NCBI RefSeq assembly: GCF_001194135.2
Contig: NC_068991.1
Location: 71,751,833 to 71,809,086, forward strand
DNA length: 57,254 nt
Direction of reading: 5' to 3'
From: Octopus bimaculoides
Taxonomy: Eukaryota
Positions 1-34,636 of the stretch are shown piece by piece (position 1 is the first letter of the stretch; each line of letters opens with the position of its first letter). Both the position numbers and the translations under genes were made by a program. The notes under the pieces are model-generated. The model was not told where the DNA came from. It saw nothing but the letters and a program-made list of their open reading frames with translations, and did not search any database.

Positions 1-337
1 ACCCTTTTACTTGTTTCAGTCATTTGACTGCAGCCATGCTGGAGCATCGCCTTTTAGTTGAGCAAATCGACCTCAGGACTTATTCTTTGTAAGCCTAGTA
101 CTTATTCTATCAGTCTCTTTTGCCGAACCGCTAAGTTACGGGGACGTAAACACACCAGCATCGGTTGTCAAGCGATGTTGGGGGGACAAACACAGACACA
201 AACATACACACACGCACACACATATATATATATGACTATATACAACAGGCTTTTTTCAGTTTCCGTCTACCAAATCCACCCACAAGGCTTTGGCCCGAGG
301 CTATAGTAGAAGACACTTGCCCAAGGTGCCCCGCAGT
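1..337 (-). mobile_element. tRNA-derived SINE family B (CORE-like ccttgggcaag motif), head truncated
   Basis: Matches the copies at 13547, 24160 and 27915: ttacttgtttcagtcatttgactgc...ttcagtttccgtctaccaaatcc...gcccaaggtgcc. Confidence 0.9.
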
Positions 338-5121: not shown

Positions 5122-6127
5122 TGACACTTTCAAATTTATCAGAATATTTGGGCTGAAGATTGGAATAGTGAAATTTTCATTCGCTTAACCATGAAACGAT
5201 TCGTATCCAATTAACTAAAGACTTGTTTTGTTTACGCTTTTCCCTCCGGTTTTTTGTTCTATGTGTGCCATAAATATCGCCATCCGTTTAGAGAAAAATT
5301 TGTAGTTTAGAATCAGTAGTTCTTTGACTGCTATTTCTAAATTTTCAGTATGTTGGAGAAGCAACTCAATGCTAATCCCTGNNNNNNNNNNNNNNNNNNN
5401 NNNNNNNNNNNNNNNNNNNNNNNNNNNNNNNNNNNNNNNNNNNNNNNNNNNNNNNNNNNNNNNNNNNNNNNNNNNNNNNNNNNNNNNNNNNNNNNNNNNN
5501 NNNNNNNNNNNNNNNNNNNNNNNNNNNNNNNNNNNNNNNNNNNNNNNNNNNNNNNNNNNNNNNNNNNNNNNNNNNNNNNNNNNNNNNNNNNNNNNNNNNN
5601 NNNNNNNNNNNNNNNNNNNNNNNNNNNNNNNNNNNNNNNNNNNNNNNNNNNNNNNNNNNNNNNNNNNNNNNNNNNNNNNNNNNNNNNNNNNNNNNNNNNN
5701 NNNNNNNNNNNNNCACACACACACACACCCATGTATATATATAAATTAGCCAATGAGAGGTGGGGTTAAATTAGTACAATAGTTCAAGGGTCCGGGAAAT
5801 CAAGGAGGGGCTCGTCAGATATTTACGAGACCCTTCCAAATACACATACAATCGACAGTCCCACTAAAAAATTTTTGAAAGGGGACCATCCTCGCCCCGG
5901 GAGCCCGAAAGCACTCTTGTTCCGCTTTGCAAGAATTCCTCCCAGAAGCCCGTATACATACATATGCTTTCTTACACCTACTGCACCTTTAATTATTATT
6001 AGCAGCAGAAATAATGGAAATAGAGTAACTTAGTACAACAACAACCTATTCCAATTAGCGTTCAGCCAATAAAATTCCATCTATCTTAATCATTTTGTTA
6101 TACTTGTTTACTTTCTAATTTGTCACT

Positions 6128-6396: not shown

Positions 6397-6836
6397 NNNN
6401 NNNNNNNNNNNNNNNNNNNNNNNNNNNNNNNNNNNNNNNNNNNNNNNNNNNNNNNNNNNNNNNNNNNNNNNNNNNNNNNNNNNNNNNNNNNNNNNNNNNN
6501 NNNNNNNNNNNNNNNNNNNNNNNNNNNNNNNNNNNNNNNNNNNNNNNNNNNNNNNNNNNNNNNNNNNNNNNNNNNNNNNNNNNNNNNNNNNNNNNNNNNN
6601 NNNNNNNNNNNNNNNNNNNNNNNNNNNNNNNNNNNNNNNNNNNNNNNNNNNNNNNNNNNNNNNNNNNNNNNNNNNNNNNNNNNNNNNNNNNNNNNNNNNN
6701 NNNNNNNNNNNNNNNNNNNNNNNNNNNNNNNNNNNNNNNNNNNNNNNNNNNNNNNNNNNNNNNNNNNNNNNNNNNNNNNNNNNNNNNNNNNNNNNNNNNN
6801 NNNNNNNNNNNNNNNNNNNNNNNNNNNNATTAAAAA

Positions 6837-8691: not shown

Positions 8692-8696
<5 letters not shown>

Positions 8697-8840
8697 GGGA
8701 TTCTTTCAGTTTCCGTCTACCAAATCCACTCCCATGATTTTGGTCAAACCGAGGCTTGCCCAAGGTGCCACGCAGTGCGACTGAACCCGGAACCATATGG
8801 TTGAGAAGCAAGGTTCTTCCCACAGAGTCACACGCATACG
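8692..8840 (-). mobile_element. SINE family B head
   Basis: ttcagtttccgtctaccaaatccact...ccaaggtgccacgcagtgcgactgaacccggaacc. Confidence 0.8.
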
Positions 8841-11019: not shown

Positions 11020-11152
11020 ACAGTCTTCCACACAGTTTCCGTCTAGCAAATTCACTCACAAGGCACTGGTCGGTCTGGGGCTACTGTAGAAGACACTAGC
11101 CTAAGGAGCCCCGCAGTTGGGACTGAAACCGAAACGACGTTTTTGCAAAGTG
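11020..11152 (-). mobile_element. SINE family B head, diverged
   Basis: cagtttccgtctagcaaattcactcacaaggc...gggactgaaacc. Confidence 0.7.
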
Positions 11153-12059: not shown

Positions 12060-12315
12060 AGGCTGATACTTATTCTATCGGTATCTCCTGCCAGACCGCT
12101 AAGTTACAGCGATGCAAACACACCAATACCGGTTGTGGTGGAGGACAAACACGGACAGAAACACACACACAGATATGCATATACATATATATGCACGACA
12201 GGCTTCTTTCGGTTTCTGCCTACCAAATCCACTCACAAGGCTTGCCTAAGATGCTACGCAGTGGGACTGAACCCGGAACTATGTGGTTGGGAAGCAAGCT
12301 TGTTACCACACAGCC
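12060..12315 (-). mobile_element. SINE family B, internally deleted
   Basis: tacttattctatcggt...gaccgctaagttac...taccaaatccactcacaaggc...gggactgaacccggaac. Confidence 0.8.
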
Positions 12316-13343
12316 TTTGTGTGTGTGTATGAGCAACAATAGTATCTGCTATTTTTGCTTATTTATTTATATTTACGTACATTTTCGCATATATTAACTT
12401 CATTTGAAAGCTAATGACTCAACATATTTTTTCGTTTATAATCATATTTTAGTAACATTAATAATAACTCGTTCGCTGCTATTTTAGTCGTTTTTAATAT
12501 AACAGCACTTCCACATTTTCGAAACAGCTTAGACAGAAGACTCGGCACCATAACCAATTAGATTTACAATATAGGCGTGCTGGTTGTTTGTTGAAAACCA
12601 CAATTCCATAACGCGACTGATAGCAAATGTTACATATTTTGGTCTAACTCTTGCTTTAGGCCATTATATGATTAATTAGGAAATATCTGTTTTGAAATAA
12701 TACCACTAACAAAAGACACGGAAGACTTTCGTTCCGTTTGAAGAACGCAGAATGCCATACAAAGAAAATCGTGTTATCCATTATCTTAATTCCTTGTTTT
12801 ATATAACGATATTAACTGGGATGTCATTTTGTCAGTGATGCATGGCATACACAAACATACATGCACGCGCGCGCACACATACACAAACATACACATACAC
12901 ACACACACTCAGGTCTTAGTGTCAGATAAAATACATTCCGATATTTGTTCAGGCTCTCTATTCTCTAGGTTCAAATCTCACTGATGTCAAATTCACTATT
13001 CGTTCTTTCTAGGGTCGAACACAGAAAATACTGGTCTAGTGCTGCTGGTACCACCTTATCTCTCTCTTAGTTGTTCCGTCAGGTAAAAAATGTGAAAGCT
13101 GAGAAAATATCGATATCTGGGCACGACTATAGAGGTTCCTGAAACACATAAGGGAAGCGTGGTAAATGTTACTAAGTCACTTTCGATTCCGAGTGACGGC
13201 CGAGGTTGATATATATATGTTTGTGTATATATGTGCGTGTAGTTGTAGTCGTGTGACCCCCACAAGTTCGCTCTGATCAATCTGACAACTGATAAAAAGT
13301 GTTCGGCTGTGACTAATCTGTCTCGTATTGGATATCTAGTAAA

Positions 13344-13546
13344 GGTGGCGAGCTGGTAGAATCGTTAGCACATTGGACAAAATGCTTAGCAGCATTTCTT
13401 GCATCTTTACATTCTGAATTCAAATTCCGCTGAGGGTCAACTTTGCTTTCATCCTTTCGGGGCCGATAAAATAAGTACGAGTTGAACACTGAGGTTGAAT
13501 TAATCGACTATTTCCCTCCCCCAAAATTTTAAGTCTTGTGCCTATA
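13344..13546 (+). mobile_element. SINE family C
   Basis: ggtggcgagctggtagaatcgttagcac...gaattcaaattccgc...ctttcatcctttcggggccgataaaataagtac. Confidence 0.9.
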
Positions 13547-13911
13547 CTCTTTTGCTTGTTTCAGTCATTTGACTGCGGTCATGCTGTAGCACCGCCTTTT
13601 AGTCGAGCAAATCGACCCCAGGACTAATTCTTTGTAAGCCTAGTACTTATTCTATCGGTCTCTTTTGCCGAACCGCTAAGTTACGGAGACGTAAACACAT
13701 CAGCATCGGTTGTCAAGCGATGTTGGGGGGACAAACACAGACACACAAACACACACATATATATATACATATATACGACGGGCTTCTTTCAGTTTCCGTC
13801 TACCAAATCCACTCACAAGGCTTTGGTCGGCACGAGGCTATAGTAGAAGACACTTGCCCAAGGTGCCATGTGGTTGGTAAGTACTTGCCACACAGCCACT
13901 CCTGCGCCTAT
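13547..13911 (-). mobile_element. SINE family B, near full length, lacking the 25-nt B-box segment; inserted at the tail of a family-C SINE
   Basis: Family B sequence from ctcttttgcttgtttcag to cctgcgccta; head reads aggtgccatgtggttgg. Confidence 0.9.
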
Positions 13912-15296: not shown

Positions 15297-16206
15297 GGTT
15301 TAGCCCTGTAATACAAAACACCAAATTGTTCCGAGAAGAGTTAATCTCTAAAGAAAGCTCACACGTGGTGTCAATGCTGAACTTGCAAGTCAATCAGTTA
15401 TAACGCAAGCTATTAAGTACGTTTTCTTTTGTACGATACGTGTAATTGAATGTAAAAGCAACTCTGTTTCTATGAGCTGCTTCCAGCAAGTGAGCAATAT
15501 ACCACCATTTCTATATATAATACGTTATTAACTAACACTTAATCCGCTACAAATGAATCACATCTCATTCTTCTCACAAACTGTTTCCGCTTAAAAACTC
15601 ATTTCTCTTCCCTTTAATATTTCTGCTCTTCCACGTCATGTGTTCAGACATTTTTTTTTCTTGCCCTTTCTGTTTTTCTAGCTCATTTCTCAAACTTCAT
15701 TCATGTAACCCCACTCATAAAACCCTCGTGACCCTCCTCACCAGCACAGCCCTTAATGCCGCATGACTGGCACCACCGCCATCAAATAATATCAGCGAAA
15801 ACATAAAAAGAGAAATCTTGGCTACTAATACGAAATAGCTTTTTAAATGTGAGCCTATGGACAAAGTATATATATATATATATATATATATATNNNNNNN
15901 NNNNNNNNNNNNNNNNNNNNNNNNNNNNNNNNNNNNNNNNNNNNNNNNNNNNNNNNNNNNNNNNNNNNNNNNNNNNNNNNNNNNNNNNNNNNNNNNNNNN
16001 NNNNNNNNNNNNNNNNNNNNNNNNNNNNNNNNNNNNNNNNNNNNNNNNNNNNNNNNNNNNNNNNNNNNNNNNNNNNNNNNNNNNNNNNNNNNNNNNNNNN
16101 NNNNNNNNNNNNNNNNNNNNNNNNNNNNNNNNNNNNNNNNNNNNNNNNNNNNNNNNNNNNNNNNNNNNNNNNNNNNNNNNNNNNNNNNNNNNNNNNNNNN
16201 NNNNNN

Positions 16207-16634: not shown

Positions 16635-16975
16635 GTGCAGCGAGGCCGAATGATTAAGAAGTTCAGTTTCCAAACACGATATCTCTAGTTTATCAAAGTG
16701 GGTGGTGACAAATTGGGTAAATGTAATTTTTCTATATATAGCCTTGTGTGTGAAATTGGGTAGACGGAAACTGTATAGAAGACTGTCGTTCAGTATTGTC
16801 ACATATTGTGTTACCCGGGTACTGCCTGAAATGTTATGTTAAAGGTTCCTTTGCCTGTGTCTGTGGAATACTCAACAACATACACGTTAGTTGAGGGTTA
16901 AGAATTTCAGTTTATTGTACAACGGAATCGTCATCGTCAAACGACGGAAATCCATCACTACTAATGACATCACTG
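16635..16975 (+). mobile_element. Old SINE with a family-B-like 5' half and a family-A-like 3' tail
   Basis: gggtagacggaaactgtatagaagactgtcgt (family B) followed by gtgtctgtggaatactcaac...acgttagtt...gacggaa (family A tail). Confidence 0.55.
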
Positions 16976-17129
16976 AAGAATAGGACTTGATAGTAAATAC
17001 CATGCTTTCATTAATAATTTTCGGTGTTCATTAGGCGCGAGCAAAACCGGACACCTACTCAACCCTGCCAACCTTTATTCCAGAGAGAGACAGAGAGGAG
17101 GGGTTGCACCAGTACTAGGGCGGGACTCA

Positions 17130-17235
17130 TTTTTCAGCTGAGGGAAAATGAAGTGTCTTGTTCAAGAATATAGCGCGTCGCCCAGTTCGAGATTTCGAAC
17201 CTAAGGTTTTGCGATCGTAAGCTTAACGTCCACCT
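17130..17235 (-). mobile_element. tRNA-derived SINE fragment of a further family
   Basis: aaatgaagtgtcttgttcaagaa...gcgtcgccc...ttcgaacc: CORE-like segment plus B-box on the minus strand. Confidence 0.5.
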
Positions 17236-17254
17236 TAATCACTTCGTTTATTTC

Positions 17255-17287
<33 letters not shown>

Positions 17288-17915
17288 AGATACACACTCC
17301 AACACATATATTTTATATTTATCATGATATACAGAAAAGAAAATGAAAAGATTAATGGAATTGACAGAATGGTAATTTGACCATAAATATATCTTCATTC
17401 TTCTCGCATTCGAATTGAATCTAAAATAAATAATTCTACACCAGTTTTCTAATGCATAGATTTCTTGATATTCAAAAAAATTTCCTTTCTTTTTTTTTTT
17501 TCTTCTCTTTTTTGAAAGATTTCACATTATTATAGAGTTGCTTGTTCATTTTCGTGAACTTTTATCAAATGAAGACAAAATGGAATATTCAAAGAATGTT
17601 ATTTTCGTATCTACGCAATTGTATGTAAATAAGAAATCCAATTTATTCAAGAAAGTCATTTCCGGTCGCCAGAGAATGTGCAACACACGAGAAATGACGC
17701 AGTTATCTTTCAAATGATTTTGTGTTTGCTTGTTTGTGTGTATGTTTTTTCAAAACTTTTGATATGAAATACACAAAACGCCGAGTCAACAGTTTCAAAG
17801 ACTAGTAGTGAGTCTCAACCGAAATTATAGGGAAAACAATGTTACATATAATCAGAAACATGGATTTTATTTTTTAAATCGACCAAAAATCTCGTACACG
17901 GAATAGGGATTGTCG

Positions 17916-17990
17916 AAGAAAATAAGTTTAAAAAGAAAAAAAACACGCACACAGTAAAATAAGGAAGAATACATCAAAGAATCACTTGCT
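17916..17990 (+). promoter_or_regulatory. A-rich leader directly upstream of the PABP start codon (possible autoregulatory sequence)
   Basis: aagaaaataagtttaaaaagaaaaaaaacac...aaaataaggaagaatacatcaaagaa directly before the ATG. Whether it is transcribed is not known. Confidence 0.3.
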
Positions 17991-19184
17991 ATGAGTATTG
18001 CAGCAGAAGTTTTACCAGTGGCTTCCTTATATGTTGGAGATCTTCATCCCGATGTTACGGAAAAAATGCTATACGAGAAGTTCTCGACTTGTGGAACTAT
18101 CATTTCAATCCGAGTGTGTCGAGACATGGTTAAAAGGCGATCTCTTGGATATGCCTACATCAATTTTCAGTCAGATTCAGATGCCAAATTAGCTATGGAA
18201 AGGATGAATTTCGCTAATTTCATGGGACGTCCCCTTAGAATAATGCAATGGCAGAGAGATCCATCCCTTCGTAAATCTGGACTAGGAAACGTATTTATTA
18301 AAAACCTGGATAAAGACATCGACAACAGAGCTTTGTACGACACCTTCTCTTTATTTGGTGACATTCTCTCCAGTAAGATTGTATCGGATGAGAACGGTTC
18401 AAAAGGATACGGGTTTGTGCATTTTGAGAGTGAAGAAGATGCGCGAAATTGTATTGAGAAGACAAACGGGATGTTACTGAATGGTAAGAAAGTGTTCGTT
18501 GGTAAATTTGTGCCCCACCGAGAAAGAAATCGAAATAAGGCATATAGAGGATTTACAAATATATACATTAAAAACTTTAGCGATAAGCTCAACGATGAGT
18601 CCCTTCGCAAACTGTTTGAAAAATACGGCGCTATAGTTAGTGCCAAAGTAATGACAGACAATTCTGGTAAGTCGAAAGGGTTTGGATTTGTAAACTTCAC
18701 GGACAGTCAAGATGCCGAGAAAGCTGTGAGAGAAATGAATAGTGTTGAGATTAATGGTAAAGAACTGTACGTTGGACGAGCACAAACAAAACTAGAGAGA
18801 TTACTGTCTATCAAGGACAAATGTCACACTTTAAAGGGATCACAAAATAAAATTGAAACTGAAGGTACGGACAGCATTATTGTATATGTAAAAAATCTGG
18901 ACGCAAACATTGATGATGTACTTTTAAAGAATTACTTTGCCAAATTCGGTAAAATTGATTGTGCAAAAGTTATGACTCAGAACGGTCGATCTAACGGATT
19001 CGGATTTGTGAGTTTTTCTACACCAGAAGATGCAACGAAAGCTGCGAGAGCGATGAATGGCAAAATACTCAACTCGAAGAAACTGTACGTTTCATTGGCT
19101 TTAAGTAAAGAAGAACGCAAGGCACAGTTATCGAACAGTTTACTCCAGAAACTCCATTCTAAACCAACTCAATTATGTTTTTGA
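17991..19184 (+). CDS. PABPC: Intronless cytoplasmic poly(A)-binding protein paralog, 4 RRMs only (no Pro/Gln-rich linker, no MLLE/PABC domain), 397 aa
   Basis: Uninterrupted ORF colinear with human PABPC1 as I recall it, through RRM2. RRM1 [26 protein letters not shown] linker, RRM2 [17 protein letters not shown]3 [17 protein letters not shown]4 [14 protein letters not shown]. It ends shortly after RRM4 ([10 protein letters not shown]...QLCF*). Confidence 0.96.
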
Positions 19185-19367
19185 CACCAACTGCGAAAAA
19201 TGTATAAACAATAACAAACAGGATTCTCATCGCTTTAGATAACAACGACATACGCAATCGACACTCGAATATTATAATAATAGACATCATCATGTAATTT
19301 TCTATCATTTTTGTTGTCTTGTTATTGATTATTGTTCGATTATGTTCGTACCATTATTATCAGATTT

Positions 19368-19578
19368 GGGACTGGCAGAATCGTTAGCACGCCGGGCGAA
19401 ATACTTAGCAGAATTTCGTCCGTCTATAAGTTCTGAGTTCAAATGCCGCCGAAGTCGATTTTGCCTTTCATTCGTTTGGAATCGATAAATTAAGTACCAG
19501 TGAAACAGTGGGATCGACGTAATCGATTCGTTCCCTCCCACAAAATTTCAGGCTTTGTGCCTATAGCAGAAAAGATTA
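19368..19578 (+). mobile_element. SINE family C, about 185 nt downstream of the PABP stop codon
   Basis: ctggcagaatcgttagcacgccgggcgaaatacttagc...gagttcaaatgccgcc...gtgcctatagcagaaaagatt. Confidence 0.9.
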
Positions 19579-19987
19579 TGAGATTGGGAGCACGAGTTAA
19601 AACGGCCAACAAGCTACCTTACAGTATTTAGTTATCTTATATAATCCTACATTCTGAATTTGAAAGCCCAACGGAGTGTTAACTTTGTCTTCTTCATACT
19701 GTTCTGTGTTCAAATCGTACTGAAGTAAACTTTACCGTCATCCTTCTGGGGTTTCATAAAATAACAGCCAGTCAAAATGGGGCTTGGTTTACCTGGCGGT
19801 ACTCTCCCGGTCAAAATTTGGGATCTTGAGTTTTATGCAAGAAATCATCATTATGGTAAATGTTTATATCGAGTACGACGTAATATAAGATGTTAATGTC
19901 AGATGTAAATATATACATGTTACATGTCAAAAGGGACAAATACAACGTTACATATCAAGTGTAACGAAGTGTTACAAGCCATGCAAA

Positions 19988-20205
19988 GGCGGCGAGCTGG
20001 CTGAAACGTTAACGCGCCAGGCAAAATGCTTAGCGGCATTTCGTCTACTTTTACGTTCTGGGTTCAAATTCTGCCGAGGTCAACTTTGCCTTTCATCCTA
20101 TCGGAGTCGATAAAATGACTAAAAGCTGAGCACTGGGGTCGATGTAAGTGACTTATACCTTCCCGTAACATTGCTGGCCTTGTGTCAAACATTTGAAACC
20201 AATAT
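19988..20205 (+). mobile_element. SINE family C
   Basis: ggcggcgagctggctgaaacgtt...gggttcaaattctgccgaggtcaactttgcctttcatcc. Confidence 0.9.
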
Positions 20206-24394: not shown

Positions 24395-24436
<42 letters not shown>

Positions 24437-24572
24437 CAGTCTTCTTTTTTAGTTTCCGTCTACCAAATCCGTTCACAAGGCTTTGGTCAGCCCGTGGCTA
24501 TAGTAGAAGACACTTGCCCAAGGTGCCACGTGGTTGGTAAGCAAGCTATTTATCACACAGCCACTCCCGCGC
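24160..24572 (-). mobile_element. SINE family B, near full length, lacking the 25-nt B-box segment
   Basis: Family B sequence; head reads aggtgccacgtggttgg. Confidence 0.9.
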
Positions 24573-25180
24573 CTATATATAAAAATTTTTCTGAAAATTA
24601 CTAACTTTTTCTTTAAAGTTATAAAATCTTTTATCAGGATGCTACTAACCTTCTTGAGAAGAAATTTTTTTTCCTAGTGTGTGCGAGCACTTTCGATTAA
24701 TCTTCTTAAANNNNNNNNNNNNNNNNNNNNNNNNNNNNNNNNNNNNNNNNNNNNNNNNNNNNNNNNNNNNNNNNNNNNNNNNNNNNNNNNNNNNNNNNNN
24801 NNNNNNNNNNNNNNNNNNNNNNNNNNNNNNNNNNNNNNNNNNNNNNNNNNNNNNNNNNNNNNNNNNNNNNNNNNNNNNNNNNNNNNNNNNNNNNNNNNNN
24901 NNNNNNNNNNNNNNNNNNNNNNNNNNNNNNNNNNNNNNNNNNNNNNNNNNNNNNNNNNNNNNNNNNNNNNNNNNNNNNNNNNNNNNNNNNNNNNNNNNNN
25001 NNNNNNNNNNNNNNNNNNNNNNNNNNNNNNNNNNNNNNNNNNNNNNNNNNNNNNNNNNNNNNNNNNNNNNNNNNNNNNNNNNNNNNNNNNNNNNNNNNNN
25101 NNNNNNNNNNNNNNNNNNNNNNNNNNNNNNNNNNNNNNNNNNNNNNNNNNNNNNNNNNNNNNNNNNNNNNNNNNNNNNNN

Positions 25181-26080: not shown

Positions 26081-26607
26081 CCNNNNNNNNNNNNNNNNNN
26101 NNNNNNNNNNNNNNNNNNNNNNNNNNNNNNNNNNNNNNNNNNNNNNNNNNNNNNNNNNNNNNNNNNNNNNNNNNNNNNNNNNNNNNNNNNNNNNNNNNNN
26201 NNNNNNNNNNNNNNNNNNNNNNNNNNNNNNNNNNNNNNNNNNNNNNNNNNNNNNNNNNNNNNNNNNNNNNNNNNNNNNNNNNNNNNNNNNNNNNNNNNNN
26301 NNNNNNNNNNNNNNNNNNNNNNNNNNNNNNNNNNNNNNNNNNNNNNNNNNNNNNNNNNNNNNNNNNNNNNNNNNNNNNNNNNNNNNNNNNNNNNNNNNNN
26401 NNNNNNNNNNNNNNNNNNNNNNNNNNNNNNNNNNNNNNNNNNNNNNNNNNNNNNNNNNNNNNNNNNNNNNNNNNNNNNNNNNNNNNNNNNNNNNNNNNNN
26501 NNNNNNNNNNNNNNNNNNNNNNNNNNNNNNNNNNNNNNNNNNNNNNNNNNNNNNNNNNNNNNNNNNNNNNNNNNNNNNNNNNNNNNNNNNNNNNNNNNNN
26601 NNNNNNN

Positions 26608-27000
26608 GTTAGCATTCCGGACAAAATTGCTTAGTGTCATTTCTTCCGGTTTGAACATCGGGGTCGATGTAATTGACTAGCCCACCCCCTCCAAATATCG
26701 TGTCTATAGAAGAAAGAATATCAAGACCAAAACATGTTTGGAGTTGTTCGGTCGTATTTCCCAAGACCAGATCAAATGTAATATTAAGGCGGCGTGCTGG
26801 CAGAAACGTTAGCACGCCCGCCGAAATGCTTAGCAGTATTTCGTCTGCCGTTACGTTCTGAGTTCAAATTTCGCCGAGGTCGACTTTGCCTTTCATCCTT
26901 TCGGGGTCGATTAAATAGTACCAGTTATGCACTGGGGTCGATATAATCGGCTGGCCCCCTCCCCCAAAATTTCAGGCCGTGTGCCTAGAGTAAGAAGAAA
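26608..27000 (+). mobile_element. Two tandem family-C SINEs (partial 26608-26712, full 26788-27000)
   Basis: ggcggcgtgctggcagaaacgttagcacgcccgccgaaatgcttagc...gagttcaaatttcgccgaggtcgactttgcctttcatcctttcggggtcga. Confidence 0.9.
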
Positions 27001-27914: not shown

Positions 27915-28240
27915 CTTTTTACTCTTTTACTTGTTTCAGTCATTTGACTGCGGCCATGCTGGAGCACCTCCTTTAGTCGAGCAAATCGACCCCAGGACTT
28001 ATTGTTTGTAAGCCTAGTACTTATTCTATCGGTCACTTTTGCCGAACCACTAAGTTACGGGGACGTAAACACACCAGCATCGGTTGTCAAGTGGTGTTGG
28101 GGGGACAAACACAGACACACAAACACACACATATATATATATACATATACATATATACGACGATCTTCTTTCAGTTTCCGTCTATCAAATCCACTCACAA
28201 GGCTTTGGTCGGCCCGAGGCTATAGTAGAAGACATTTCTA
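27915..28240 (-). mobile_element. SINE family B, head truncated near a gap
   Basis: High similarity to the copies at 1-337 and 13547-13911. Confidence 0.9.
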
Positions 28241-29521
28241 CTATATAANNNNNNNNNNNNNNNNNNNNNNNNNNNNNNNNNNNNNNNNNNNNNNNNNNNN
28301 NNNNNNNNNNNNNNNNNNNNNNNNNNNNNNNNNNNNNNNNNNNNNNNNNNNNNNNNNNNNNNNNNNNNNNNNNNNNNNNNNNNNNNNNNNNNNNNNNNNN
28401 NNNNNNNNNNNNNNNNNNNNNNNNNNNNNNNNNNNNNNNNNNNNNNNNNNNNNNNNNNNNNNNNNNNNNNNNNNNNNNNNNNNNNNNNNNNNNNNNNNNN
28501 NNNNNNNNNNNNNNNNNNNNNNNNNNNNNNNNNNNNNNNNNNNNNNNNNNNNNNNNNNNNNNNNNNNNNNNNNNNNNNNNNNNNNNNNNNNNNNNNNNNN
28601 NNNNNNNNNNNNNNNNNNNNNNNNNNNNNNNNNNNNNNNNNNNNNNNNNNNNNNNNNNNNNNNNNNNNNNNNNNNNNNNNNNNNNNNNNNNNNNNNNNNN
28701 NNNNNNNNNNNNNNNNNNNNNNNNNNNNNNNNNNNNNNNNNNNNNNNNNNNNNNNNNNNNNNNNNNNNNNNNNNNNNNNNNNNNNNNNNNNNNNNNNNNN
28801 NNNNNNNNNNNNNNNNNNNNNNNNNNNNNNNNNNNNNNNNNNNNNNNNNNNNNNNNNNNNNNNNNNNNNNNNNNNNNNNNNNNNNNNNNNNNNNNNNNNN
28901 NNNNNNNNNNNNNNNNNNNNNNNNNNNNNNNNNNNNNNNNNNNNNNNNNNNNNNNNNNNNNNNNNNNNNNNNNNNNNNNNNNNNNNNNNNNNNNNNNNNN
29001 NNNNNNNNNNNNNNNNNNNNNNNNNNNNNNNNNNNNNNNNNNNNNNNNNNNNNNNNNNNNNNNNNNNNNNNNNNNNNNNNNNNNNNNNNNNNNNNNNNNN
29101 NNNNNNNNNNNNNNNNNNNNNNNNNNNNNNNNNNNNNNNNNNNNNNNNNNNNNNNNNNNNNNNNNNNNNNNNNNNNNNNNNNNNNNNNNNNNNNATTCAG
29201 AGGCCCTTGAAACGAAAATTAATGAATTTTGGAGGTTACTTAAACATTTTGCCATTGTACTTATCAAACAGATTGGTGTTCGAAAGTAAGCAGCAATTGT
29301 AATTCAAAGATGTTTAATTACTGAATCAAGATTTTTTGATGTTTTTACTAAAGTCCAGGAATCACTTTAGCTGTGAATTCGCACCCAAACACGACTTGAT
29401 AGAATCTCACGAAACATTTAAAGAACTAACTGCAATTCTCAACTCGTCATTAGAATTGGTAAGATTATGAAGCAAGGAAACATAATAAGTAATTCAATTA
29501 ACCACGTAGAAGATACATACT

Positions 29522-29733
29522 GGATTCAAATTTTGGCACAAGGCCAGCAATTTCGGGGGCGGGATTAAGTCGATTACATCGACCCCAGTGTTCGACTGGT
29601 ACTTGTTTATCGACTCCTAAAGGATGAAAGAAAAGTCGACCCAGGCGAGATTTGAACTCAGAAAGTAAAGACGGACGAAATGTAGCAAAGCATATTGTCC
29701 GACATGCTACCGATACTGCCAGCTCACTGCCTT
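29522..29733 (-). mobile_element. SINE family C
   Basis: Reverse complement: ggcacaaggcc...gattacatcgacccc...gatttgaactcagaa...gccagctcactgcc. Confidence 0.85.
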
Positions 29734-29961
29734 ACGTGGAAGACATGTATTAGCCATCAAAAACGCACAAAGATTGTTAACTTGACTAAACATTTATTAT
29801 TTGATGTCAGTGACCAGTGTCAGTCCATTCTGTAGCGTGTCTTCGGACCAAATAGCCCGTGGGAAAATAACTCATTTCTCCGTCCCCGCCTCTGAAGCCA
29901 TGAAAGCAGGGTCATGAGCGCTGCACTTCCTCACCGGATTAAGCTATAGAAGAAATATTTA

Positions 29962-33289: not shown

Positions 33290-33508
33290 CTTTTCTACTC
33301 GAGGCACAAGGCCCGAAATTTTGGGAAAGGGGGGAGGGGCAGTCGATTAGATCGACCCCAGTACACAACTAGTACTTAATTTACCGACCCCTGAAAGGAT
33401 GAGAGGCAATGTTGTCCTCGATGGAATTTGAACTCAAAACGTAAAGACAGACGAAATACCCTTAAGCATTTCGCTCGGCGTGCTAACGTTTCTGCCTCCT
33501 CGCCGCCT
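33290..33508 (-). mobile_element. SINE family C
   Basis: gaggcacaaggcccgaaattt...gaatttgaactcaaaacgtaaagacagacgaaatacc...ctcgccgcc. Confidence 0.9.
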
Positions 33509-33532
33509 TATTAAACGAATAGAGATTACCTC

Positions 33533-34013: not shown

Positions 34014-34636
34014 NNNNNNNNNNNNNNNNNNNNNNNNNNNNNNNNNNNNNNNNNNNNNNNNNNNNNNNNNNNNNNNNNNNNNNNNNNNNNNNNNNNNNNN
34101 NNNNNNNNNNNNNNNNNNNNNNNNNNNNNNNNNNNNNNNNNNNNNNNNNNNNNNNNNNNNNNNNNNNNNNNNNNNNNNNNNNNNNNNNNNNNNNNNNNNN
34201 NNNNNNNNNNNNNNNNNNNNNNNNNNNNNNNNNNNNNNNNNNNNNNNNNNNNNNNNNNNNNNNNNNNNNNNNNNNNNNNNNNNNNNNNNNNNNNNNNNNN
34301 NNNNNNNNNNNNNNNNNNNNNNNNNNNNNNNNNNNNNNNNNNNNNNNNNNNNNNNNNNNNNNNNNNTATATATATATATATATATTAGATATTTATTTAT
34401 TTACATATTTCCACGGCCTTATGTGGGAGCGGAGTCAAATTGTCAATTGTACGAATGACGATGTCAAACTTTTAGGAGTAATCTCTTTGGGTCCTTCTGT
34501 TAAATTTTAAAAGGATTATGACAAAGAATGCGTTACATTTGCATATTGGGTTCTGTAATTTATAACTCCATTGACACAAATTAATATATACATATATGTG
34601 TGTATGTGTGTGAGAGTATGCACGTAAACACACACT

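Follow-up and report, generated by a model that had tools for sequence, protein, structure and literature searches.

What does an ORF in an octopus genome represent when it carries the four RRMs of a poly(A)-binding protein of the cytoplasmic type (PABPC) and stops short of the linker and the MLLE domain: a working gene, the 5′ portion of a longer one, or a dead retrocopy? The ORF lies within the window that we analyzed (the whole 57,254-nucleotide stretch of Octopus bimaculoides DNA) and occupies positions 71,769,823-71,771,016 of CM046611.1 in assembly GCA_001194135.2. We refer to it as type A and consider it best explained as a functional gene from a family, specific to cephalopods, of intronless cytoplasmic PABPs that lack the MLLE (with a probability of roughly 0.7).

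Architecture of the type A gene

Type A is an uninterrupted reading frame from ATG to TGA (397 codons, zero internal stops), and an in-frame TAA is found 12 codons 5′ of the ATG. As the start of the encoded protein aligns with that of full-length PABPCs, the N terminus is complete. The Pfam scan of the protein returned four RRM_1 domains (E = 2e-86) and no MLLE (PF00658). An intact, intronless frame of this length with all four RRMs had been reported in a preliminary description of the locus, and both points hold, as does its attribution of the DNA to a probable cephalopod. The top matches among solved structures were yeast Pab1 (6r5k; E = 1e-115, with query residues 11-384 corresponding to chain residues 42-415) and human PABPC1 RRM1-2 (1cvj/4f02; E = 3e-81), with which residue numbering is identical.

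Type A is 60 to 64% identical to full-length PABPCs, and the identity of ∼60% to PABPC1 is sustained over RRM1-4. An AlphaFold2 model built from a 25-sequence alignment contains four RRM folds with core pLDDT values of 84 to 95 (mean pLDDT, 79). In the alignment, the aromatic residues of RNP1 and RNP2 are intact in all four RRMs, and the RNP1 of RRM2 is exactly the human sequence. The protein thus has four tandem RRMs in PABPC order with canonical RNP1/RNP2 motifs, the same domain order and motifs as in the RNP core of yeast Pab1 and human PABPC1 (6r5k, 1cvj, and 4f02). It is not a canonical full-length PABPC; without the linker and MLLE, it is a truncated derivative. The features of the locus are collected in Table 1.

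Table 1. Features of the type A locus (positions in the window)
Feature	Position	Strand	Evidence
Upstream block conserved with Argonauta hians; putative promoter or 5′ UTR	17673..17990	+	
A-rich/oligo(A) tract, 48-75 nt upstream of the ATG	17916..17943	+	
Complete single-exon CDS, type A RRM-only PABPC, 397 aa + TGA	17991..19184	+	ORF, Pfam, structure matches, dN/dS
RRM1, aa 11-89; RNP2 SLYVGDL and RNP1 LGYAYINF intact	18021..18257	+	Pfam, alignment, model
RRM2, aa 99-175; contains eIF4G-contact region NGMLLNG	18285..18515	+	Pfam, structure match, alignment
M161 codon ATG, numbering as in human PABPC1	18471..18473	+	Sequence, structure match
RRM3, aa 189-266; least constrained of the domains	18555..18788	+	Pfam, model, omega 0.20
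RRM3-RRM4 connector, aa 267-295; longer than in full-length PABPCs; low pLDDT	18789..18875	+	
RRM4, aa 296-369; RNP1 NGFGFVSF (K to N, position 1)	18876..19097	+	Alignment, model
Pab1 linker-helix equivalent, aa 367-390; first three residues overlap the last RRM4 strand	19089..19160	+	
Stop codon TGA	19182..19184	+	All six type A sequences 397 aa
Downstream block conserved with Argonauta hians; putative 3′ UTR	19185..19332	+	

Close relatives in O. sinensis, O. vulgaris, and Argonauta hians have been named automatically by NCBI pipelines as "polyadenylate-binding protein 1-like" or "4-like," and our full-text literature searches found no description of a cephalopod RRM-only PABPC. Elsewhere in the window, there was no Rfam match and no tRNA, and four other ORFs had no Pfam match.

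An RRM-only family of retroposed origin

Octopods carry two distinct RRM-only genes, type A (397 aa) and type B (399 aa). Type A orthologs of identical length were found in O. sinensis/O. vulgaris (99% identity), in two further Octopus-like sources, and in Argonauta hians (86%), giving at least four named species; type B is 96 to 97% identical between Octopus and Argonauta. In 3/3 genomes, type B lies upstream of type A on the same strand, at a distance of 28.3 kb in O. bimaculoides (where type B is located ∼10 kb beyond the left edge of the window), ∼36 kb in O. sinensis, and ∼11 kb in A. hians. The A-B tandem pair is older than the split between Octopus and Argonauta. Window positions 17673-19332, including ∼320 bp upstream of the gene, align continuously to the type A locus of A. 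hians at 79.7% identity, and within Octopus, the gene block at 16843-19551 is 94.7% identical, compared to 89 to 91% in the flanks.

Logan contigs yielded a third RRM-only group (cluster 3, 396 aa), which is also present on a 72.8-kb ENA contig; there it is a single exon, as is every RRM-only copy examined. The cluster 3 locus had no repeats in common with the octopod or cuttlefish loci, and tblastx showed no synteny. Its flank contains a LINE reverse transcriptase. The preliminary description had proposed a retroposed copy; retroposition stands, whereas the copy is not a lone one but part of an old family made up of a tandem pair and a third group.

The nearest full-length relatives of these genes are the "alpha" PABPCs (642 aa) of the cuttlefish Acanthosepion pharaonis and its relatives, which are 64% identical to type A and 75% identical to type B. 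The alpha gene spans 27.5 kb and has nine coding exons (aa 1-66, 65-130, 129-170, 169-222, 222-251, 247-325, 324-546, 545-621, and 618-642), and six of its introns fall in the RRM region, which has none in the RRM-only genes. An intronless coding region set against an intron-bearing parental lineage points to a retroposed origin, as had been suggested from the single locus. We rejected truncation via an exon boundary or intron retention, since the stop lies inside the alpha exon encoding aa 324-546. At the locus itself, neither a poly(A) remnant nor a target-site duplication was found, and we detected no UTR or flank homology between type A and alpha transcripts or between types A and B. The missing scars are expected if the insertion is older than the saturated dS between the A, B, and cluster 3 groups, and they are uninformative rather than contradictory.

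For the phylogeny, we used a neighbor-joining tree of 387 columns with 300 bootstraps and vertebrate PABPC1 as the outgroup; PABPC5 and PABPC4L sequences were not included. Bootstrap support was 88 for all cephalopod PABPCs and 100 for each of the beta clade, alpha plus the RRM-only genes, and the RRM-only genes themselves (A, B, and cluster 3). In addition, the three RRM-only groups have in common eight derived residues (I47V, D70E, K78M, S87W, K113R, C128S, T147S, and A379S) at positions that are otherwise near invariant from molluscs to mammals. The tree, these residues, and the same end point indicate a single origin of the RRM-only family inside the cephalopods. The branching among the groups is less straightforward: neighbor joining places type A with cluster 3 (80%), and the counts of shared derived states are low (four for A and cluster 3, one for B and cluster 3, and zero for A and B). 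The grouping of A with cluster 3 may well be due to long-branch attraction.

On this evidence, an mRNA from the multiexon alpha-type PABPC lineage was the source of an intronless copy whose reading frame ends just past the helix following RRM4. The substitutions in RRM1 and RRM2 were acquired by this copy, and a subsequent duplication produced the B-to-A tandem pair.

The preliminary description had likened the ORF to mammalian PABPC4L and PABPC5 while supposing an independent origin. The layout is indeed the same: PABPC5 (X linked and ovary enriched) and PABPC4L also have four RRMs without the proline-rich linker and MLLE, and they show a similar identity to canonical PABPC (∼60 to 65%). They are lowly expressed or tissue restricted, with a divergent RRM4, and the RRM4 of type A is likewise altered. 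The genes are not orthologous, as the cephalopod ones branch beside alpha, within the cephalopod PABPCs, in a tree that does not contain PABPC5 and PABPC4L themselves. The single origin inside the cephalopods makes the shared architecture convergent rather than homologous. The cephalopod family also differs from its mammalian counterparts in having a conserved tandem pair, a full linker-helix equivalent, and defining substitutions in RRM1/2. Type A is therefore an independent instance of an already known kind, the RRM-only PABPC retrogenes.

Primate PABPC3 and rodent PABPC2/PABPC6 are reported to be testis-specific, intronless, retroposed PABPCs that are functional (PMC12151635), as proposed here for type A. 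Unlike types A and B, they keep the linker and MLLE. The octopus beta gene resembles them in this respect, being a full-length, intronless PABPC with both linker and MLLE.

The retained module and its predicted function

To compare constraint along the protein, we calculated dN/dS (omega) by the Nei-Gojobori method with a codon bootstrap (95%). Between the type A genes of O. bimaculoides and A. hians, omega was 0 in RRM1 (0 nonsynonymous versus 23 synonymous changes at a dS of 0.7), 0.02 in RRM2, 0.20 in RRM3, 0.24 in the RRM3-4 connector, 0.08 in RRM4, and 0.12 in the tail. RRM1-2 combined (omega = 0.01) are nearly frozen. Type A evolves approximately four times faster than type B, chiefly in RRM3, the connector, and RRM4, and has fixed 23 lineage-specific substitutions compared to 7 in type B, with 9 of the 23 in RRM4. 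The RNP1 of RRM4 reads NGFGFVSF in type A in place of KGFGFVCF. RRM4 is the most altered conserved domain of type A, recalling the nonequivalence of the RRM4s of PABPC5 and PABPC4L. The family-wide substitutions carried by RRM1/2 mean that RNA specificity or partner binding may differ.

The preliminary description had the protein terminating just after RRM4. This needs correction, as type A continues for ∼25 residues, covering the stretch that corresponds to the linker helix of Pab1, and ends at residue 397, 7 residues past it. The helix was mapped with the constant +31 offset of the alignment between type A and Pab1 (6r5k). In the Pab1 poly(A) RNP, residues ∼398 to 421 form a linker helix that extends RRM4 and packs on the RRM1 of the next protomer, creating an oligomerization interface, while the linker beyond the helix is disordered (PMC6547884). 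The alignment of type A to Pab1 runs from the leader through RRM4 to the linker helix; the disordered linker and MLLE beyond it are absent. In our AlphaFold2 model, a helix is predicted at residues 373-389 with low confidence (pLDDT < 50), and purifying selection acts on the tail in type A as well as in type B. Evolution has kept the entire ordered RNP-forming unit, and the disordered linker and docking domain alone were removed. Since the truncation falls after the linker helix and not after RRM4, cooperative assembly of the poly(A) RNP may be preserved in type A.

As for partner binding, type A keeps the named eIF4G contacts T118, M161, L162, and N164, as do alpha and beta; the codon of M161, a residue whose retention had been pointed out earlier, is indeed ATG. 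In human PABPC1, eIF4G is contacted by M161 together with D165 (PMC12873600, PMC10546976). Position 165 is G in all of the lophotrochozoan PABPCs that we aligned, including alpha, beta, and type A. M161 by itself is no proof of eIF4G binding, as neuPABP has an RRM2 and yet has lost the interaction (PMC10546976). The putative eIF4G site of type A is in the parental state, and its sequence is compatible with eIF4G binding.

On this basis, type A would bind poly(A) tails via RRM1-2, which are intact and strongly conserved, and would probably still stack head to tail along them through the surfaces of the leader/RRM1 and the RRM4-linker helix. The contact with eIF4G is probably preserved as well, as the site is unchanged from the parent. 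Without the disordered linker and MLLE, PAM2 proteins (eRF3, PAN3, Tob, GW182/TNRC6, and Paip1/2) would have no docking site; tails would be coated and protected, and termination coupling and regulated deadenylation would lose the route that depends on the MLLE.

It had also been suggested that the protein is uncoupled from deadenylation altogether. This is too strong, as PAN2-PAN3 recognizes RRM/linker-helix interfaces of the poly(A) RNP (PMC6547884) and BTG2 is reported to bridge the RNA-binding domains of PABPC1 to CAF1 (PMC4773420). The uncoupling of type A is probably partial. Overexpressed human PABPC5, although RRM-only, still protects mRNAs from PUM/CCR4-NOT-mediated decay (PMC12873600). 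The RRM4s of PABPC5 and PABPC4L cannot substitute for that of PABPC1.

The likeliest setting for such a protein would be stored mRNAs in a restricted tissue, with the ovary or oocyte as the leading candidate. An O. sinensis gene annotated as "Pabpc1" (EVM0003110) has an FPKM of 0.36 in testis and 829 in ovary (PMC11202624). As a housekeeping PABPC should not be so ovary biased, types A and B are natural candidates for this gene. Beta is also a possible identity, and the ovary bias is only an indirect lead toward the RRM-only genes and toward the germline restriction that the preliminary description had raised.

Type A could instead be a translational repressor or competitor that binds poly(A) while engaging eIF4G unproductively, keeping mRNAs stable and silent and excluding full-length beta. 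The principle has been demonstrated by neuPABP (PABPC1L2A/B), an intronless, MLLE-less, tissue-restricted paralog that shows that such proteins can repress translation (PMC10546976). The eight family-defining substitutions are concentrated in RRM1/RRM2 and were subsequently frozen, the pattern that a new partner or specificity would be expected to leave, and an ovary-specific PABP would fit the storage of dormant maternal mRNA. We nevertheless regard this alternative as unlikely. neuPABP has two RRMs, a unique N-terminal domain, and mutated eIF4G contacts, whereas type A has four RRMs, and its T118, M161, L162, and N164 are unchanged from parental alpha and beta; G165, being present in all lophotrochozoan PABPCs examined, represents no family-specific loss.

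Less probable still is a shift of RNA specificity away from pure poly(A), which would make the RRM-only proteins sequence-selective regulators of A-rich or AU-rich elements or of a specific ncRNA. Five of the substitutions (K78M, S87W, K113R, C128S, and T147S) lie at otherwise invariant RRM1/2 positions, the leading basic residue of the RRM4 RNP1 has been lost from type A, and the RRM4s of human PABPC5/4L are functionally divergent. The intact aromatic RNP1/RNP2 residues of the four RRMs, the RNP1 of RRM2 identical to the human one, and the level of identity to PABPC1 kept over RRM1-4 all speak against such a shift.

The stop codon, the flanks, and purifying selection

We searched for the C terminus that type A lacks. 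In a tblastn search of the whole window, the C termini of alpha and beta gave nothing beyond noise (E > 0.3), and an MLLE profile hidden Markov model (HMM) found no match in six-frame translations of the 57-kb window; the beta protein, included as a positive control, was the sole match (E = 2e-54). No MLLE was detected by the profile HMM at the O. sinensis and O. vulgaris orthologs either, over 10 kb of gap-free sequence downstream, and the gap-free A. hians locus has no linker or MLLE coding potential. Seeming linker remnants in A. hians were rejected as artifacts of (ATC)n/(AAG)n microsatellites. The preliminary description was thus right that no linker or MLLE remnant follows the stop, and the genomic searches of the window and the orthologous loci likewise bear out its view that there is no downstream MLLE exon.

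The flanks contain further candidate signals. The A-rich tract upstream of the ATG has 19 A's in 25 nt, a richness matched by ∼1.3% of random 80-nt segments of the window. The leaders of all four type A orthologs have it, as do those of type B, alpha, and beta; cluster 3 lacks it. Vertebrate PABPC1 mRNAs have an A-rich autoregulatory element in their 5′ UTR. The tract may be a counterpart of this element, inherited from the parental 5′ UTR. Downstream, O. bimaculoides type A has no AATAAA or ATTAAA within 1.2 kb of the stop, and AATAAA is present 14 to 313 nt past the stop in A. hians type A and in all type B and cluster 3 genes. Logan contigs were rejected as transcript evidence, being genomic or uninformative: those of cluster 3 begin with (TA)n and follow a genomic contig colinearly, and a further contig that is colinear with the window at 92.4% ends in repeats.

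It is very improbable that the gene extends beyond the ORF, with transcripts in which this 5′ portion is spliced to a remote exon encoding the linker and MLLE. The window does hold 5,160 N-masked bases (5.2 kb), which could in principle conceal an exon, and the canonical poly(A) signal is missing near the stop in O. bimaculoides. Against this, 38 kb of downstream sequence is devoid of MLLE or linker coding potential, as are the O. sinensis, O. vulgaris, and A. hians loci; the position of the stop is kept in 6/6 type A sequences, and types B and cluster 3 terminate at approximately the same place; the tail is under purifying selection right up to the stop; and the relatives carry AATAAA shortly past it.

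Pairwise comparisons of whole genes are given in Table 2. The type A dS within Octopus is in line with the ∼10% divergence of the flanks. Both type A and type B have been under strong purifying selection since their duplication, in accordance with the earlier expectation that the gene is kept by selection rather than having a dN/dS near 1.

Table 2. Pairwise dN/dS estimates for the RRM-only genes
Comparison	dN	dS	omega (95% bootstrap bounds)
Type A, O. bimaculoides vs O. sinensis	0.0043	0.111	0.039 (0.009-0.082)
Type A, O. bimaculoides vs A. hians	0.0765	0.81	0.095 (0.064-0.136)
Type A, O. sinensis vs A. hians	0.0759	1.01	0.075 (0.049-0.106)
Type B, O. bimaculoides vs A. hians	0.0185	0.81	0.023 (0.011-0.038)
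Cluster 3, P0007 vs P0132	0.0096	0.35	0.028 (0.013-0.049)

The idea that type A is a retrocopy, dead or drifting neutrally, with an ORF that survived by chance has nothing in its favor except the intronless state and the distance from canonical PABPC, and it is refuted by the type A omega values of 0.04 to 0.10 (upper bootstrap bounds of ≤0.14), by the absence of nonsynonymous changes in RRM1, and by intact orthologs across the Octopus-Argonauta divergence (dS, 0.8).

The roles of MLLE-less PABPCs, including human PABPC5 and PABPC4L, are still poorly understood. The independent invention of such a protein in cephalopods and its long maintenance in two copies at omega values of 0.02 to 0.1 argue for a PABP without a docking domain as a recurrent, selectable solution, and this recurrence argues against an accident of mammalian retroposition. 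Truncation right after the linker helix marks the leader-RRM1-4-helix unit as a minimal module preserved by evolution, in agreement with the cryo-electron microscopy view of the poly(A) RNP.

A broader scenario, which we put forward only tentatively and consider doubtful as a whole, is that octopods have lost the multiexon alpha gene, so that all of their cytoplasmic PABPs are retrogene derived (beta and the RRM-only pair), and that the RRM-only genes are the ovary-biased "Pabpc1" and serve as PABPs for the storage of maternal mRNA. If so, tails would be coated and RNP arches assembled in oocytes without an MLLE docking site, and the proteins would be the MLLE-less equivalent, reached by convergence, of the embryonic PABP of vertebrates; nature would thereby have supplied a separation-of-function allele of PABPC. 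The apparent absence of alpha in octopods would mean that an essential housekeeping gene had been cleanly replaced by a retrogene. Should the ovary lead hold, the octopus would be a source of abundant natural MLLE-less PABP, with which tail protection and RNP assembly could be studied apart from the PAM2-mediated steps of termination and deadenylation.

RRM-only paralogs beyond the window gene

Type B, the tandem partner of the window gene (type A), lies 28.3 kb upstream of that gene in O. bimaculoides, ~10.3 kb to the left of the window start (see the table for coordinates). It has evolved ~4 times more slowly than type A, with an omega (dN/dS) of 0.02. The Argonauta hians type B was deposited as a 390-aa model labelled "partial"; an in-frame ATG 9 codons upstream of this model yields a complete 399-aa type B protein, beginning MNPAAAILHMASLYVG.

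In the third RRM-only group, cluster 3, the length of 399 aa seen in some forms comes from a non-ATG start codon picked by a prokaryotic gene caller. The cluster 3 C terminus (NQMAWQFPVC) is still similar to the start of the linker (GQMGQMFPAS) in alpha, the multi-exon full-length cephalopod PABPC, which suggests that the original RRM-only copy reached into the linker before being shortened. A gastropod protein, P0019 of Elysia crispata, is also of RRM-only length (398 aa). As its sequence is that of a canonical PABPC and its contig is short (10 kb), P0019 probably reflects a gene model that was cut short and not a genuine RRM-only gene.

Coordinates of paralogs, leader tract, repeats, and gaps
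Feature	Location	Remarks
O. bimaculoides type B (XP_014773726.1), RRM-only, 399 aa	O. bimaculoides CM046611.1 71,740,307-71,741,506 (L015 10001-11200)	same strand as window gene
A. hians type B	L018 2974-4173 (BAAFZT010000019.1)	
Cluster 3 RRM-only genes, 396 aa	L003-L008; L010 10001-11191	
Beta coding exon, 1,893 bp, uninterrupted	L009 2001-3893 = O. sinensis CM016881.1 14,773,349-14,775,241	single exon
Oligo(A)/A-rich tract, presumed 5′ leader of window gene	window 17916-17943	kept across type A orthologs
SINE-like repeat copies	window 13342-13509, 19372-19526, 19986-20155, 26784-26952, 29562-29734, 33341-33510, 44173-44387, 45042-45274, 47619-47751, 49667-49834	
~95-bp repeat copies	window 241-335, 8696-8754, 11033-11115, 12195-12243, 13774-13866, 24432-24530, 28156-28230, 53361-53455	
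N runs	window 5382-5713, 6397-6828, 15894-16206, 24711-25180, 26083-26607, 28249-29194, 34014-34366, 44551-44969, 45968-46271, 48219-48797, 53117-53360	plus three shorter blocks
Densely packed microsatellites of (TG)n/(TA)n type	window 55986-56898	low-complexity ORFs on both strands

Leader tract and surroundings of the window gene

The A-rich tract of the presumed leader, which holds 20 consecutive A residues in the O. sinensis type A ortholog, is found in the type B, alpha, and beta leaders as well and may be a PABP autoregulatory element. Immediately downstream of the window gene are two copies of a SINE-like repeat (~170 to 230 bp) that has at least 10 copies in the window and many more at the type B locus of O. 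sinensis. Another family of short repeats (~95 bp) is common to the window and the A. hians locus, with 80 to 90% identity. No tRNA-like gene was found in the window by ARAGORN, and the window had no Rfam match.

The 14 N runs of the window add up to 5,160 bases, and (TA)n/(TG)n microsatellites border most of them. Long ORFs listed across these runs are spurious, being created by N, and the several overlapping ORFs of 120 to 220 aa that lie on either strand of the dense microsatellite region are low-complexity, microsatellite-derived sequences and not genes.

Full-length PABPCs of octopods

The sole full-length PABPC found for octopods is beta, a protein of 630 aa in which the MLLE is present. 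The gene consists of a single uninterrupted exon and is therefore probably an older retrogene. P0145, a beta protein of 645 aa encoded on an ENA contig, clusters with cuttlefish-type beta sequences; judging from this grouping, beta may be intronless outside octopods too. A published list of sex-related genes gives a "Pabpc1" of O. sinensis (EVM0003110) an FPKM of 829.37 in the ovary versus 0.36 in the testis (FDR, 9e-46) (PMC11202624).

Protein searches that covered the annotated genomes of four octopods (O. bimaculoides, O. sinensis, O. vulgaris, and A. hians) gave no alpha-type PABPC, although alpha, if present among the annotated proteins, would rank as the top full-length match. Octopods could have lost the parental alpha and replaced it by a retrogene.
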